From Neoconidiobolus thromboides FSU 785 (taxonomy: Eukaryota > Fungi > Entomophthoromycota), in contig MU626439.1 of assembly GCA_025603075.1 (NCBI GenBank), forward strand, positions 1 through 38,853: a stretch of 38,853 bases of DNA, written 5' to 3'. Below the pieces are notes generated by a model. That model had not been told where the DNA came from and ran no database searches. It was given only the letters and a program-made list of their open reading frames with translations. Shown in pieces: positions 11,634 through 21,530 of this stretch (within the stretch, counting starts at the first letter, position 1; every line of letters begins with the position of its first letter). The translations under genes were made by a program, and so were the position numbers.

Positions 11634-11737
11634 ATATGGAAATGTATTTTTTGTTTAAGAATTTTACTAATAATCTTTCCACTCAAATAGCACTTAAAAG
11701 ATAGAAAAAGTAATGGAGCCAAAAAAACACCTTCATT
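11634..11737 (-). mobile_element. MITE family copy C (inverted relative to B, ~35 bp away)
   Basis: atatggaaatgtattttttgtttaagaattttactaataatctttccactcaaatagcacttaaaag...aaaaaaacaccttcat. Confidence 0.85.
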
Positions 11738-12273
11738 TAGTAAATTAAAAAATCAACCTCAGTTTATTTCATAAAAACATTACAAGATCTAAAAGTTTCA
11801 ATACTTACTAAGTAAGTGAGTATTTTATTAAGTGAGTATTTTATTAAGTGATAAAAATTAATTATTAAATCTTAATATTGTTTAAGTTATTAACAGCTAA
11901 GTTAATAAATAAAGACTATTATATTATTTATATTATATAGTAATTAACCATAGTTTTAAAGCCAACATTTCCTCCTATACAGATATCTATCAACTTAATG
12001 ATGTATTGATAATACAATTATAACATTAAAACAATCTGTTTATTTGATACTAAATCTTCAATGTTGACTATGAAGGAGTTAATAATATATATTTTTAATA
12101 AAGTTTTGTAGAAAGATGTATCTATTTGCATACAACTTTGATTAATATCAATATATAGATTATATTAGTAAAAGCCTTGCTAATCCGTGAATTTGTGTTA
12201 AATTCAATACAAATTCCACTAACTTGTAACATAAATTATAAAATAATTTAAAACTGTATCAGATCCTTGCTTT
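11735..12273 (+). repeat. ~535-bp near-identical direct repeat, copy 1
   Basis: Base-by-base comparison with 20257-20790 finds 3 substitutions and one 4-bp indel over the ~515-bp core; the 3' ends fray. Confidence 0.97.
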
Positions 12274-12390
12274 TTAATAGAATTTTCAAAAAAAGACATG
12301 CCTATATATTAAACAGCTTAAAAATTTAATGGTAAAATGTAAATGATTAAAACTCAAACGGATAAAATTAGTCTAGAAATCAATATAAAA

Positions 12391-12506: not shown

Positions 12507-14748
12507 TTATAGTTTGGGTTTTCTTAAATTAATTTCTCCCTTAAAGTCCCCAATACTATAAGTCTCCCAATCATTAGCAATTGGTGAAAGAATCAGTCCA
12601 TCTGGAATAGCAAATCCATCTAGATAAGTCAATGTTTGCTTTGAAACAAGTTCTATTTGTTGCTTCAATAATTGAGATAATCGACATGCATTAGCAGGAG
12701 TAATAAATTCATTACTCATTAAATAGCCAAAGTCAGCTTCTAAAGTAGAAAGCATATAAACTTTACATAACTCTTTTAAGGCACCTCTAGAATAAAAACT
12801 TTTAGTATCGATTTGAGTTATATAATTATATTGGCTCACCTTGTAGCTTTTGATACTTTTTCATCTTGAATAACACAAGCAAATTCTTGTAAGCTAAAGA
12901 ATTCACCATAGGTCCGAGACAAGTCCTGAACGAGCTCGGATTCTTCCTTCATCCAGATTTGAAAGATATCTTTTCCTTCCTTTCTTTTCTGAATAGTAAT
13001 TGCACCAAGCTAATAAAGTATTAATATAGTTTATAACAAACTTTCTAAATTTACTTGTTTAACACGATTTATAAATCTTAAATTCATAAGGTCTACTAAA
13101 CTATTAAAATCATCAACTTTCCAGCTCTGGGGTGCACCACGGTTGTAGAAAGGAGAGAAATTGAATTTCTTCTGCTTAATATCAGAAAGTAATTCTTTAG
13201 CTGCTTTTTGCATTAAAACAACATTATCCCCTTCTGCAGTAATACACTAAATTTAAAAATTAAGAAAATAAAATTTAAAAAATAGTAGAATTTTACGGCA
13301 TGAGCTGAGCCGATAATGGCAGTAAAGGCAGAATGCTGTAGATATCCTTGTCCACCACACCTTTCACGACCAATAGAACCGCAACGTTCAGCATTCCAAG
13401 TTACTAAAGGTTTAATTGTACAACACAAACGAATTATTTCTGAATAAGAATATTGTTCAGGGTGAGCCCACACCCTCTTCGTATAATTTAAGCCAAAATT
13501 CAGTGCAAAAGTACGTGCCAAAAGCGGTATTAAAGCTTTTTGTTGAAGTTGATATTCAAGGATAGGGGTATCTGATTTTCCTGTACGACCCCCAGCAAGT
13601 CGAGTTGCTGAATATCTTAAAGCTATCGTTAGGGCTAATTTTGCCCCTGATAAGCTCACGGCGGACATACACAAACGACCAGTTAATAGCTGGTCTGCAA
13701 CTTTACCAAACCGGCTATATATGTTAGTTTTTAAATATGTATATATATATATATATTACTTTCTCCGTCCTACAATTTCAGAAGTATAAGTACCGTTAGG
13801 TAGAACATCAGAGTAACGATTTAATAAATTAATTCTTGGGGTTCTAGACAAATTTTTTTAAAAAATATATTAAAAAAAGAAATTGCACTATACCTAACAT
13901 GATCGAATTTCAATACTGCACTATCCACGCCATCTAGGCCAATCTTATTGCCCATTTCACGAATCGTTACCCCTGGACATATTTCATTATTTGGGCCATC
14001 ACGAATTTTTACAATGAAGCAATGAATCCCTTCTTGCTTTCCTTTAACCTCGAGCTGAGCAAACACTATTGCATATTTTGCATGCTTAGCTCCATTACTT
14101 ATCCAGAATTTTTGACTCTTTACTGTTGGGCTATTGATAATGAATTCTTGAGTTTTTTCATCATAAATAGCAGTGGTTTCCATTTCAATAGCATTATTAC
14201 CATACCCTAGCTCAGTAAGTGCAAAGCAACCAGTTGCATCAAAATTATTAACTTCTTTTAAGATCTCGTTATGGCGTTCAGTACCAAGTTTAACTAAAGT
14301 TCCAATAAACTAAATAAGGTGTTAGTTAATAATGAAGAAACGTAAAGTATATTACAAGGTTATAATGTACGGTAATTTTGGTGGTTATTGATTCAGGTGG
14401 AAAACTTGTAACTTCATGAACTACTCAATTATTTATATATTACCATAAAAGATGAAAATTAAACTTACCAGCTAATATATTTAAAGGGTTTTTAGTAAAA
14501 TCAGCAACGTCAATAAACTTTCCTTTTGCAATTGCTCTTAATTGTTCGAATACTCGCTCTTGCTTTTCATGTTGTAAACAATTAAACTTTGGAGCAAATA
14601 ACTCAATATTTTTCTCTATAAATGCTTTTAATCTTATTCTGTTTTCACGGTCATGAAAATCCAGCAATTGATTGACTTCATCTGAATCAAAAGTAGGAGC
14701 ATCAAAGCGCTGACGATTGTTTATAAAGGCAGAAGATGATTTAGACAT
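12507..14748 (-). CDS. ACOX: Peroxisomal acyl-CoA oxidase, 8 exons, C-terminal PTS1-like RKPKL
   Basis: Spliced translation gives [72 protein letters not shown] and [12 protein letters not shown], all hallmarks of the acyl-CoA oxidase family. It ends in PKL-stop. Confidence 0.93.
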
Positions 14749-15549
14749 GAGATTTTCTCAAATATAATGATAAGAAATGTAACTGAGTCACCCTATTTAT
14801 ATACCTTTCCTCACTCTTCTAGAATATTTCTTTAAAACATTTTAAATAGCTTTTTTGCCTTTAATTTATAGTATAATTTTGTAGACATGGATAATGATCC
14901 ATTAAAAATAAATAGCTAACTTTGTTAAGGTAGGATCCTAAGTACATTATTCTTGGGGAAAATAGCTTAATAGCCTAGAATTTTTACCCCAACTTAGCAT
15001 ATTTAAAGCATCAGGTTTAACTTTGATTTAGCAAACAAGTTAGAATGATGTAATAGCGATTAACTTCAACCTAAAAATTAATTTTTTTCTAAGATTGATT
15101 AACAGCAACATAGAGTTTTACTCCTAAAATTTAAAAAAATTACAAATAATGAAAAGGGGATGAAATAGTAATTAATAATGACCTTAAACAAAATTATATT
15201 AACACATCTTGAAAAATAAAATAAAGCATATTAATAATAAATTTTTTTGAAACTTTTATTTGGATCGATATCATTACGTGCTTAAACTGATCTGATTAAA
15301 TACTTATAATTAAAATCCACTATCATGTGTTTTAAAATAATTTTACCACTTTTGGAGTGATCTCTGCTTTTTATTAACTTTAGGAGTAAAAACTATGATG
15401 GCGTAAATCAACCTCAAATAATTACACCATAAAATAAAACTAGTTTCTTACTTAATATAGCTATTACAACTTCTTTATGACCTATTTGGCTGCTCATTTG
15501 AGAATGGCATTTGTGCTATAACTTTAGGCAAAATGTATATTAGGCTTTA

Positions 15550-15627
15550 AAAAATTGGCTATCTAGAGAAGTTGATTATAAAAGCCATGACTAAAAAAGT
15601 TGTGGAAGAGTTGCAACGGCTGTAATC
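15550..15627 (+). pseudogene. Second copy of the putative integrase zinc-finger relic
   Basis: Diverged match to the reverse complement of 1199-1275. Confidence 0.3.
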
Positions 15628-16428
15628 TGATGTTATTTGGATAAACAAACTGTACCTAATTTATTAAGACGATTCAAAAATTATACGAGTGATGAAATTT
15701 TAGAAACAATCATAACTATTTTAATCTATTTTTTATTTACACTATCACAAAGCTTAACCACATTTATTTTAAGCTATAGAAATCAGCTCTAATATAGCGG
15801 CATAAACTTAAATATTATATTAAAATTAATAATCATTTTATTGCTATTTTGTTGTAATAATGAAAAATGTTTAAATCTTTATGTTGAAACATGAAACAAT
15901 AAATGGATAATTGCTTAGATTAATTTGCATTACCTTTGTTCATTTTAAAATTGAGTGTACATACGTAAATAAAGGATAGTGAGTCTTTACCCCTTAATAA
16001 AAATCATCATTAGTTTGGAGGAAGATTAGAAAATATAAAGCTATAAATAATTTTACATCTTTTTAGCTAATGTTTCAGGGTGAAAACATTTATACTTAAG
16101 CTATTTTTTTACCAATTTAACTTATAAAATAGTACTCCGGACTTTTACTTATTAGGGAAATTTTATAAAATTAAAAATGATAGTTTATATTACGATAACA
16201 GGAAATTTAATAATGTCAAATGTTGATTAAATTATTTTATTGGTGATGTACCTGAAATGTAAAAACTAGTATAAAAGCCCTCACAATTTTAATGAAGCAG
16301 ATAAACCATCCTTTGTAAATTATTTATATTGTTTTATAAGCGTATTACTATATTACTAAAAATCATCTAATAAGTCGAATACTATAGCTATAACTATAAC
16401 TATAAATTTTAACCCAAACCAATATAAA

Positions 16429-17679
16429 ATGATTAAGAAATCCAAAAGCCAGGATAAGTTGAACCAGACTAATAAGAGTTCTAACCATATTCCTATATCG
16501 TTTAATGGAAAAGAAAAAGCAGTAGAATCCGCAGCTATTGTACCAAATGTCATGGAATTAGAAATTACAGATAAAGCCAAAAAATATTTCAAAACTAGAA
16601 CACCAGGGGGTAACGGCGCAATAAGAGATCTTATAGTAAGACCACCACTTACTAAAGATAGTATCAACGTTGGTGATAACGATTATCTCTGTATCGCAAA
16701 AGCTGTAGCTGTAACTAACCATGACTCTGAAGTAGTTATGTCAAGCGCTTTTATATCCGATGATGGGCCACAAGGTTTATTTCAGAAGCAACTAGCAGAA
16801 TATATGGGCAAAGAAGCTTCCATGATTGCACAATCAGGATATGCAGCTAATGCTGGCCTTATTCAAGGTTTTTGCAACAGTAAAACCAATGTGTACATAG
16901 ATAATCTTCTACATGGATCCTTTAGAGATGGCTTGGGTTTTGTTAGACCAAAAACACACATATTTAAGCATAATGACGTTAATGAGTTGGAAGAGATGAT
17001 TAGAAAAAATGGTCATGGTATCATTATAGTTGAAAGTTTATATAGTGTAACAGGAGACTTCGCGCCTATTAAAGATATAATAAGCATCAAAAAGAAATAC
17101 GGTTGCTTTCTAGTGGTTGACGAATCACATGGAATAGGATTATATGGACATAAAGGCAGAGGATATTCCAGTTTGTTTGATTACAAGGAAGTCAATATCG
17201 TTACCGCTAGTTTAGCAAAAGCTTTCTGTGCAAGAGCAGGAGTTATAGCTGGGGATAAACTACTTATCGACTATGCAAGAGAACATTCAATGCCTAATAT
17301 ATTTAGTACTTGTATAATGAATTATGATTTGATCCGAATGCATAAAATATTACATAGGATAATAGATATGGATAAAGAGCGAGAACATCTTTTGAACATC
17401 TCAAAAGAGTTTAGAAATTCTTTGGAGCGTTGTGGTGCAAATTATACCAAATCCGATATTCCTTCACCAATTGTTAGCTTGGTGTTTCCATCAGAAAAAA
17501 GTATGGTGAAAATGAACAAATATCTGCTAGAGAAAAATGTATTTGCTTCATGTTTTATTTATCCAACTACACCAATAAACGCCCCTTGTCTAAGATTTAC
17601 ATTGAACTCGGATATTACTATGAAGGATATCAACTATATAATGTCACAAATAACTTCCTATAATGGCTCAAAGTTATAA
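16429..17679 (+). CDS. cqsA: PLP-dependent alpha-oxoamine synthase of the CqsA/LqsA (alpha-hydroxyketone autoinducer synthase) type, intronless, C-terminal PTS1 SKL
   Basis: Motifs NDYL, MSSAFI, QSGYAANAGLIQ, TNVYID..H162, HGIIIVESLYS, GCFLVVD231ESH, TASLAK264AF..RAG, NIFST, VFASCF and RFTLNSD. These run colinear with Vibrio CqsA as I recall it (NDYL, MSASFL, QSGWNANVGLLQ, TNVYID..H, GPGIIVVDSIYS, GCALLVDESH, TASLAKTF..RAG, AIFSS, VFGSVF, RLSLNSD). The family-level call (class II aminotransferase/AONS) is firm; the CqsA subfamily call needs a phylogeny. Confidence 0.85.
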   Translation: MIKKSKSQDKLNQTNKSSNHIPISFNGKEKAVESAAIVPNVMELEITDKAKKYFKTRTPGGNGAIRDLIVRPPLTKDSINVGDNDYLCIAKAVAVTNHDSEVVMSSAFISDDGPQGLFQKQLAEYMGKEASMIAQSGYAANAGLIQGFCNSKTNVYIDNLLHGSFRDGLGFVRPKTHIFKHNDVNELEEMIRKNGHGIIIVESLYSVTGDFAPIKDIISIKKKYGCFLVVDESHGIGLYGHKGRGYSSLFDYKEVNIVTASLAKAFCARAGVIAGDKLLIDYAREHSMPNIFSTCIMNYDLIRMHKILHRIIDMDKEREHLLNISKEFRNSLERCGANYTKSDIPSPIVSLVFPSEKSMVKMNKYLLEKNVFASCFIYPTTPINAPCLRFTLNSDITMKDINYIMSQITSYNGSKL

Positions 17680-20256: not shown

Positions 20257-20790
20257 ATTTAGTAAATTAAAAAATCAACCTCAGTTTATTTCATAAAAAC
20301 ATTACAAGATCTAAAAGTTTCAATACTTACTAAGTAAGTGAGTATTTTATTGAGTATTTTATTAAGTGATAAAAATTAATTATTAAATCTTAATATTGTT
20401 TAAGTTATTAACAGCTAAGTTAATAAATAAAGACTATTATATTATTTATATTATATAGTAATTAACTATAGTTTTAAAGCCAACATTTCCTCCTATACAG
20501 CTATCTATCAACTTAATGATATATTGATAATACAATTATAACATTAAAACAATCTGTTTATTTGATACTAAATCTTCAATGTTGACTATGAAGGAGTTAA
20601 TAATATATATTTTTAATAAAGTTTTGTAGAAAGATGTATCTATTTGCATACAACTTTGATTAATATCAATATATAGATTATATTAGTAAAAGCCTTGCTA
20701 ATCCGTGAATTTGTGTTAAATTCAATACAAATTCCACTAACTTGTAACATAAATTATAAAATAATTAAAACTGTCAGATACCTTTGCTTT
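20257..20790 (+). repeat. ~535-bp near-identical direct repeat, copy 2
   Basis: Matches 11735-12273. Confidence 0.97.
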
Positions 20791-21530
20791 CTAATAAAGA
20801 GTTTGTTTTATAATTTTAAGCAAAAATTTAATATAAAATGCTTGAAAAATTGAGTTTTATTTTAGTATTGTTTTATTGGTTGTTTTGTTCATAATTTAAG
20901 TTTTAAAAATTAGATAAAAAAGTGAAATCGATTCAGCAGACCATTCCTACCTATTATTAATTACAAATGTAAGATTATCTCTTAGTTTAAAATAAGCATG
21001 CTTTTCCAATAAAAGCTTCTTATTATTGCAACCTATAGTTTTATTGGGATAAACTTGCGCAAAATTGTAAAAAAAATCTATAAAATAAGATAGATTATAA
21101 AATAAATACTAGCAAAGTTCTCACATTAAATAAATTGATTTTTCAAAATATGCAGGTCCCAAATTTAATTCATTTCAAATGCAAAAATAATGTTTTGAGG
21201 TTCCGATCATAACTAATATTTGTAATTAACAAATTTAACTTAAATGATTGGATTTATTTTATGCAAGTTAATCATACAGTTAGCCATTCTATATGATGAT
21301 TATGCAAACTAGACTTTATATTTTTACAAATATACCCAATATATTAAATAATGAATTTTGGTTATTGAAATAACACGACTGTTCCGTTCTCAACAGTTAA
21401 ATCTCAAATATACTAAAGCCATCTATCAACTATAAATATAATACGAAAGTAATAATACAATTTATATTATTTATTATATAAGTACTCATTTTGAAGCTTC
21501 TAAAATCTTTAAAAAGTGCCTTTGAACAAA

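Follow-up and report, generated by a model that had tools for sequence, protein, structure and literature searches.

A CqsA/LqsA-type alpha-oxoamine synthase with a predicted peroxisomal address in Neoconidiobolus thromboides and other eukaryotes

The contig MU626439.1 of the Neoconidiobolus thromboides FSU 785 assembly GCA_025603075.1, analysed here over its whole length (38,853 nucleotides, hereafter the window), carries a resident, expressed fungal gene whose product falls, among alpha-oxoamine synthases, into the CqsA/LqsA clade and not with BioF, KBL, ALAS or SPT. To our knowledge, CqsA and LqsA have so far been described solely as autoinducer synthases of bacteria. While the enzyme family is known, its eukaryotic branch, characterized by a predicted peroxisomal targeting, a lost sensor and a linkage with an oxidase gene in two fungal lineages, was previously undescribed. 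In the reading that we favour, with a probability of about 0.6, the product is a pyridoxal phosphate (PLP)-dependent synthase that would be imported into peroxisomes by its C-terminal Ser-Lys-Leu (SKL) and would condense an acyl-CoA derived from beta-oxidation with an amino donor, the neighbouring acyl-CoA oxidase acting as the putative acyl supplier.

The family assignment is supported by profile, structural and phylogenetic comparisons. Pfam searches only returned the generic Aminotran_1_2 domain (PF00155, E ~1e-36 to 4e-36), and the best NCBIfam match was NF005526 (alpha-hydroxyketone-type quorum-sensing autoinducer synthase) with 323.8 bits, followed by the BioF model TIGR00858 (219 bits) and by SPT, KBL and ALAS models (165 bits at most). 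Searches of PDB sequences gave 200 bits for Vibrio cholerae CqsA versus 119 at most for any other alpha-oxoamine synthase. The AlphaFold model of the synthase, built with 55 homologs as input (pLDDT 94.5, predicted template modelling score 0.92), matched solved alpha-oxoamine synthases with template modelling (TM) scores of 0.8-0.9. The closest structures were those of V. cholerae and V. campbellii CqsA (TM 0.91, root-mean-square deviation 2.4-2.5 Å, 32-33% identity), BioF structures being more distant (TM 0.82-0.87, ~3.9 Å, 21-25% identity). Consistently, the neighbours of the protein in a protein atlas based on features and structure were autoinducer-synthase clusters. The preliminary description of this gene, which was made from the nucleotide sequence and regarded the product as CqsA-like rather than BioF-like, is thus borne out by both profile and PDB scores.

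The residues expected of an alpha-oxoamine synthase, H121, D190, H193, K223 and R348 (numbering of a 375-residue form, see below), all occupy universally conserved columns, and none of the universal catalytic columns is altered in the synthase. Four of these residues had been pointed out in the preliminary description as H162, D231, H234 and K264 (numbering of a 416-residue form), and they lie on columns invariant across CqsA, BioF, KBL and ALAS. Its remark on their spacing also holds, with 69 residues from His to Asp and 33 from Asp to Lys in the synthase versus 69 and 34 in V. cholerae CqsA (2wk8, HMMER alignment placing K264 on K236), K236 being the PLP lysine of CqsA (PMC3376566). Residues specific to the family were sought by comparing 88 sequences of bacterial CqsA with 31 from eukaryotes and 59 from the BioF/KBL/ALAS group, and 43 columns with a consensus of at least 80% in bacterial CqsA that is rare in the outgroup were defined as CqsA-specific. 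The eukaryotic clade keeps 17 of these 43 columns at 70% or more, including Q94, Y115, G156, S192, S220, R228 and A229 around the PLP motifs. S192, within the Asp-Glu-Ser-His (DESH) motif, is of the CqsA type, this position being occupied by Ala in BioF and KBL, and residues of the BioF type were almost never taken up by the eukaryotic sequences.

Homologs of the synthase were collected by word-index searches and by searching 1.84 billion cluster representatives exhaustively with HMMER. Besides Conidiobolus coronatus, the nearest relative with a name (49% identity), and one further close relative, these searches identified eukaryotic homologs in Basidiobolus ranarum, in Mortierella alpina and other Mortierellaceae (Mortierella spp., Podila and Actinomortierella), in the nematode-trapping fungi Orbilia brochopaga and Dactylellina cionopaga, and in Emericellopsis atlantica. 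In Aspergillus, the gene was detected in a few species only (A. undulatus, A. lucknowensis, A. venezuelensis, A. aurantiobrunneus, A. filifer and A. oleicola), together with a fragment in one isolate of A. fumigatus. Homologs are also carried by the bdelloid rotifers Adineta vaga and A. ricciae, and about 12 eukaryote-like sequences were found in read-archive assemblies. Phylogenetic relationships were examined by maximum likelihood with 96 rows (LG+C20+F+G4, rooted on BioF/KBL/ALAS) and in a smaller tree with 78 rows. In the main tree, the CqsA family, including the synthase, is separated from BioF/KBL/ALAS by a split with a support of 100/100 and a branch of about one change per site, as expected from the preliminary description. 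Eukaryotic sequences form a single clade of 31 rows (98/94) nested among bacterial CqsA, within which fungi are grouped with a support of 94/73 (100/99 with 78 rows). The sister group of this clade (joint support 100/99) includes a gene from a Legionella sp. plasmid along with some sequences of metagenomic origin.

Because the eukaryotic clade nests within bacterial CqsA in a tree rooted on BioF/KBL/ALAS, the ancestry of the synthase is, on phylogenetic grounds, ultimately bacterial. Likewise, because this clade unites sequences from no fewer than two early-diverging lineages of fungi with those from several lineages of ascomycetes, from rotifers and from other eukaryote-like contigs, the transfer and the gain of the SKL ending appear not as events of this fungus but as predating the N. 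thromboides lineage by far. The horizontal acquisition proposed in the preliminary description is therefore retained as regards the bacterial origin, whereas a recent transfer private to this fungus is ruled out by the breadth of the clade. The source of the eukaryotic subfamily was possibly a Legionella-like or another protist-associated bacterium.

Several observations were made on the bacterial and viral relatives. The plasmid gene of Legionella sp. D16C41 (L012:3950-5158) has no adjacent sensor kinase and is found next to genes encoding a major facilitator superfamily transporter, a nucleotidyltransferase and a peptidase S51. This gene and P0125, also from the sister group, could represent either the donor lineage or a return transfer from a eukaryote to Legionella. 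A scan of viral sequences for homologs revealed a single phage contig and no giant virus. This AT-rich contig (IMGVR_UViG_3300025769_014894) encodes a CqsA-family product of 377 amino acids (P0153, L094:5366-6499) right after a DNA polymerase, as well as a PD-(D/E)XK-like exonuclease and a product resembling single-stranded DNA-binding proteins, and P0153 branches near the base of the group leading to the eukaryotic clade.

The C-terminal sequence of the synthase, SYNGSKL followed by the stop codon, is that of a canonical peroxisomal targeting signal of type 1 (PTS1), as recognized in the preliminary description, PTS1 tripeptides being taken here as [SAC][KRH][LM] at the very C-terminus, and this type of ending is conserved in the clade. 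Among members with intact ends, about 25 finish with SKL, AKL, ARL or SRL, and three further members with TKL, NKL or ASL. These tripeptides cap tails that cannot be aligned and whose lengths vary by as much as about 30 residues. None of about 120 bacterial homologs has such an end, except P0111, a sequence from the sister group labelled as a gammaproteobacterial metagenome-assembled genome. Since the tripeptide is kept on unalignable tails and is nearly lacking in bacteria, these data argue strongly for a selection maintaining PTS1 across the eukaryotic clade, and the synthase is predicted to be peroxisomal. The deposited C. coronatus protein ends with DLSY, which is best regarded as a gene-model error, straight reading of the gene to the contig end (L002:10001-11174, KQ964618.1) giving TSKL. 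The rotifer copies (P0011, P0013, P0017, P0023, P0024 and P0026) are nested in the PTS1-bearing clade but have lost PTS1. They have acquired an N-terminal extension of 40-100 residues together with an insertion ahead of the MS(G/S)xF motif, suggesting a retargeting to another compartment. PTS1-bearing sequences were also found on compact, gene-dense, low-GC contigs, namely P0115/P0255 (L088, ERZ27314334), P0113 (L093, SRR28335996) and P0116 (L089). Most of their neighbours have no Pfam match, those recognizable being Peptidase_G2 and Band_7, plus Skp1 on L089, and these contigs could belong either to a protist or to a large virus. For an alpha-oxoamine synthase, carrying a PTS1 is not novel as such, because canonical fungal and plant BioF is also targeted to peroxisomes by a PTS1 and is needed there for biotin synthesis (PMC3713238), a precedent that the preliminary description did not take into account.

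The genomic environment of the eukaryotic genes differs from that of their bacterial counterparts by the absence of the sensor. A histidine kinase was found beside the bacterial homolog at 130 of 159 loci (70/80 in genomes and 60/79 in metagenomes), most of these kinases matching the CqsS sensor domain, and no CqsS/LqsS-type kinase adjoins the synthase gene at any of 12 eukaryotic loci (the window and 11 others). In N. thromboides, the gene immediately upstream encodes an acyl-CoA oxidase, the two genes being arranged head-to-head and diverging across 1.7 kb. The M. alpina ortholog displays the same head-to-head organization with an acyl-CoA oxidase that is 31-40% identical to that of the window and ends with AKL. 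The oxidase was absent from the flanks of about 170 other loci, ten eukaryotic and about 160 bacterial, the metagenome loci scanned for this linkage being almost only bacterial. The oxidase-synthase pairing is thus genuine but not universal.

From these elements, we infer the peroxisomal location, the substrates, the product and any signalling role of the synthase as follows. A bacterial gene of the CqsA type would have given rise to the eukaryotic subfamily, with the loss of the link to a CqsS/LqsS sensor and the gain of PTS1. The C-terminal SKL would take the synthase into the peroxisome, and the product of the adjacent oxidase gene, with its own PTS1-like end, would be a likely partner that supplies or trims the acyl chain. 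There, an acyl-CoA made or trimmed by beta-oxidation could be condensed with a small amino donor, either S-adenosylmethionine (SAM), as for CqsA, or 2-aminobutyrate, alanine or a similar compound. This decarboxylative Claisen condensation would yield an alpha-amino-ketone or enamino-ketone lipid, perhaps further converted to an alpha-hydroxyketone. The broader proposal that fungi, bdelloid rotifers and some other eukaryotes make alpha-amino- or alpha-hydroxy-ketone lipids in peroxisomes, by means of a synthase derived from CqsA and supplied by a dedicated acyl-CoA oxidase, is more tentative and, taken as a whole, rather doubtful.

A number of findings weigh against a CqsA-like peroxisomal synthase working with this oxidase. 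The NF005526 score falls below the equivalog cut-off of 428 bits, and canonical fungal BioF is not among the tree rows, no PTS1-bearing sequence of this kind having been obtained from the word-index searches, the exhaustive search of representatives or the candidates P0049 and P0331-P0346. Several positions also depart from the bacterial family. R322, an Arg in 99% of bacterial CqsA, is never Arg in the eukaryotic clade. The G-T-H-G stretch that follows DESH in classical CqsA is replaced by G-L-Y-G in the synthase, T197 and H198 being changed clade-wide, and G-L-Y-G also occurs in a Ferruginibacter gene linked to a kinase, as well as in further deep branches of the bacterial sequences. W125 is variable, and clade-wide changes affect L256 and E259, the latter being replaced by Asp. 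Because several residues nearly invariant in bacterial CqsA are replaced throughout the clade, the donor or acyl specificity may differ from that of the bacterial enzymes. As for the oxidase, its PKL end is a non-canonical PTS1, and no oxidase was found within 10 kb in C. coronatus, in the further close relative mentioned above, in three ascomycetes or in four other contigs.

Two other functions have to be considered for a peroxisomal synthase of this type. One is that of a KAPA (8-amino-7-oxononanoate) synthase analogous to BioF, in which beta-oxidation started by the oxidase would provide pimeloyl-CoA to be condensed with alanine for biotin. In favour of this hypothesis, BioF of the canonical type in fungi and plants bears a PTS1 and has to be located in peroxisomes for biotin to be made, and peroxisomal beta-oxidation is the presumed source of pimeloyl-CoA (PMC3713238). 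BioF is also the second-best profile family, and an oxidase paired with a synthase would suit such a module. However, the synthase and its whole clade fall inside CqsA, separated with the support given above from every BioF sampled, and columns that are 80-100% fixed in BioF/KBL/ALAS (G69, M166, G229, V340, R336 and R346) have not been adopted. Characterized bioF, as known from A. nidulans, is located in a bio cluster with bioDA and bioB, while bio genes were found neither in the window nor next to the copies of Aspergillus, Emericellopsis, Dactylellina and Mortierella. The gene is moreover patchy in Aspergillus, being restricted to a few species and a single A. fumigatus isolate, whereas BioF is reported across Aspergillus species, and it is carried by rotifers too. 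A role in biotin synthesis therefore appears quite improbable.

The other function, which corresponds to the full interpretation given in the preliminary description, is that of a faithful CAI-1/LAI-1 synthase, condensing SAM with C8-C12 acyl-CoA into a product that acts on CqsS/LqsS sensors or on animal or amoebal cells. CqsA and LqsA, which use SAM and decanoyl-, octanoyl- or, presumably, dodecanoyl-CoA (PMC3376566), are indeed the closest characterized enzymes. Medium-chain acyl-CoAs are intermediates of peroxisomal beta-oxidation, and, among the carriers of the gene, many are associated with animals or are predators of them (Conidiobolus, Basidiobolus, Orbilia and Dactylellina). Yet, although compatible with the data, this view is weakened by an identity to CqsA of only 32-37%, the loss of R322 and the changes at further CqsA-invariant residues, the missing sensor partner at all 12 eukaryotic loci, and the lack of a linked downstream reductase. 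In addition, a literature search combining CqsA with fungi, horizontal gene transfer, peroxisomes or rotifers retrieved no paper on a eukaryotic member. We thus consider a strict conservation of the bacterial activity as unlikely, and retain a peroxisomal CqsA/LqsA-clade synthase whose donor and acyl chain may have diverged.

A further possibility is that the gene derives from bacterial contamination, results from an assembly artefact or is a pseudogene undergoing decay, as might be suspected from its lack of introns, its bacterial ancestry and its location in a repeat-rich island between direct repeats of 545 bp. The rest of the contig speaks otherwise, since it bears intron-containing genes for the second-largest subunit of RNA polymerase, TAF1, the acyl-CoA oxidase and an ESCO-type acetyltransferase. 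The GC content of the ORF (open reading frame) region is about 0.30, as in other coding parts including those adjoining it, for a contig with 27% GC. Evidence of expression was provided by the contigs of one public run, whose labelling as RNA is a guess of the tool used. These contigs match the window at 100% identity and lack six GT-AG introns (45-53 nt) of the neighbouring oxidase gene. Their depth is 2-6 over the synthase ORF versus 10-18 over the oxidase, and in this run RNA cover is absent from the intergenic positions 14961-15945 and past 17522. With a transcribed and intact ORF, a complete set of catalytic residues and orthologs in related fungi, decay of the gene is highly improbable, and contamination or artefact is ruled out by the spliced RNA of the neighbouring gene, the shared base composition and the orthologs. 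The intron-bearing neighbours on the contig also point to a genuine fungal locus.

The coordinates of the synthase gene and of the surrounding features are compiled in Table 1. As stated in the preliminary description, the gene is an intronless ORF of 416 codons ending with SKL, and RNA contigs are colinear with the window over 16533-16837 and 17029-17454. This ORF is open throughout, but the public gene model and all close homologs begin at Met42, so that the 416-residue reading is only partly upheld. Translation more likely starts at Met42 (375 amino acids), because the N-termini of the closest homologs align there and not to the 41-codon extension. This in-frame extension (16429-16551) is rich in Lys, Ser and Asn and shows no conservation in homologs. 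The longer form is nonetheless compatible with a low RNA cover that already begins upstream of 16429. Two substitutions in the extension (16437 and 16469) were observed in RNA contigs of a second organism or strain. Another gene model of the clade calls for revision, that of M. alpina in public records (L087:8324-9459), which looks wrong in that a short intron removes about 18 conserved residues that are present in Mortierella sp. AD094.

Table 1. Features of the synthase locus in the window (contig MU626439.1).
Feature	Position	Strand	Remarks
Left copy of the direct repeat (~545 bp)	11735..12279	+	97.6% identity to the right copy
Gene of the acyl-CoA oxidase (model of 634 aa)	12507..14748	-	At least six GT-AG introns of 45-53 nt (RNA); end RKPKL-stop, PTS1-like
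Shared intergenic region, putative bidirectional control region	14749..16551	.	RNA low from ~15946-16143
CqsA-like alpha-oxoamine synthase, longest ORF	16429..17679	+	Aminotran_1_2; top NCBIfam NF005526; top PDB V. cholerae CqsA
Likeliest synthase CDS (coding sequence), 375 aa from Met42	16552..17679	+	Public gene model; N-termini of homologs align
His162 codon (His121 in the 375-aa form), predicted PLP-stacking histidine	16912..16914	+	Column invariant in all groups; aligns to the CqsA AHMS motif
D-E-S-H motif (Asp231 to His234), predicted contacts with PLP ring N and O3'	17119..17130	+	Invariant columns D190, E191 and H193
TASLAK motif; Lys264 (17218-17220), predicted Schiff-base lysine	17203..17220	+	Aligned with CqsA K236
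C-terminal Ser-Lys-Leu (PTS1) and stop codon	17668..17679	+	PTS1-type end kept across the eukaryotic clade
Right copy of the direct repeat	20257..20796	+	97.6% identity to the left copy

Compared with CqsA of V. cholerae and V. harveyi and LqsA of Legionella pneumophila, the synthase falls in the same clade by profile, structure and tree, with the same fold, the catalytic His, Asp-x-x-His, Lys and Arg, and the CqsA-specific residues listed above. It differs by its eukaryotic host, its PTS1, the lack of an adjacent CqsS/LqsS kinase, its moderate identity, the replacement of R322 and G-T-H-G, and the acyl-CoA oxidase linked in two fungi. In nematodes, the side chains of ascarosides are shortened by dedicated acyl-CoA oxidases in peroxisomal beta-oxidation. 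A dedicated oxidase paired with a peroxisomal enzyme by which a small lipid would be formed from an acyl-CoA of shortened chain may be reminiscent of these pathways, but chemistry and enzymes are unrelated and the comparison is an analogy only. With fungal and plant BioF, the synthase shares the superfamily, the predicted reaction type, the C-terminal PTS1 and a presumed dependence on acyl-CoA generated in peroxisomes (PMC3713238). It is distinguished by its position in another clade, outside any bio cluster, by its patchy distribution and by the absence of BioF-type residues, the BioF rows sampled here excluding canonical fungal BioF. In public records, the eukaryotic members are named generic PLP-dependent transferases or hypothetical proteins, and the automatic label of the Joint Genome Institute (JGI) for some metagenomic relatives, including one PTS1-bearing sequence of fungal type, is "CAI-1 autoinducer synthase".

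These data point to a conserved, expressed eukaryotic branch in which a predicted peroxisomal address stands in place of the bacterial sensor, with an oxidase neighbour in two fungal lineages. They illustrate a probable case of ancient transfer from bacteria to eukaryotes followed by retargeting to an organelle, and provide a candidate pathway for a new class of lipid metabolites in fungi and rotifers. If ketone lipids are indeed produced in peroxisomes, eukaryotes would possess a small-molecule pathway that originated in bacteria, and its products could be fungal signals or take part in a cross-talk with CqsS/LqsS sensing. With products resembling CAI-1 or LAI-1, fungi living in soil or in association with animals could release, or imitate, signals to which Vibrio, Legionella and numerous bacteria of the environment respond. 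Should the products differ, the alpha-oxoamine synthase scaffold would have been repurposed, paralleling the independent peroxisomal targeting of BioF.

The oxidase-synthase unit of N. thromboides is bracketed by the two direct repeats, which lie 8.5 kb apart and are the only two copies in the window. Inverted repeats resembling miniature inverted-repeat transposable elements (MITEs) adjoin both copies, and the unit may be a mobile or recombination-prone cassette. A different organization was encountered in D. cionopaga (L091:11931-13310), where an Aminotran_5-family gene and an ABC (ATP-binding cassette) transporter gene come after the CqsA-like gene, a trio that may constitute a small metabolic cluster unlike the oxidase pairing. 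Finally, long fusions in which the CqsA-type domain is located downstream of additional regions were identified in P0109 (802 aa), in L018 (ORF of 1207 aa) and in P0130 (1195 aa). In P0109, the CqsA-type domain is preceded by a second alpha-oxoamine-synthase-like domain, the other fusions having large N-terminal regions.

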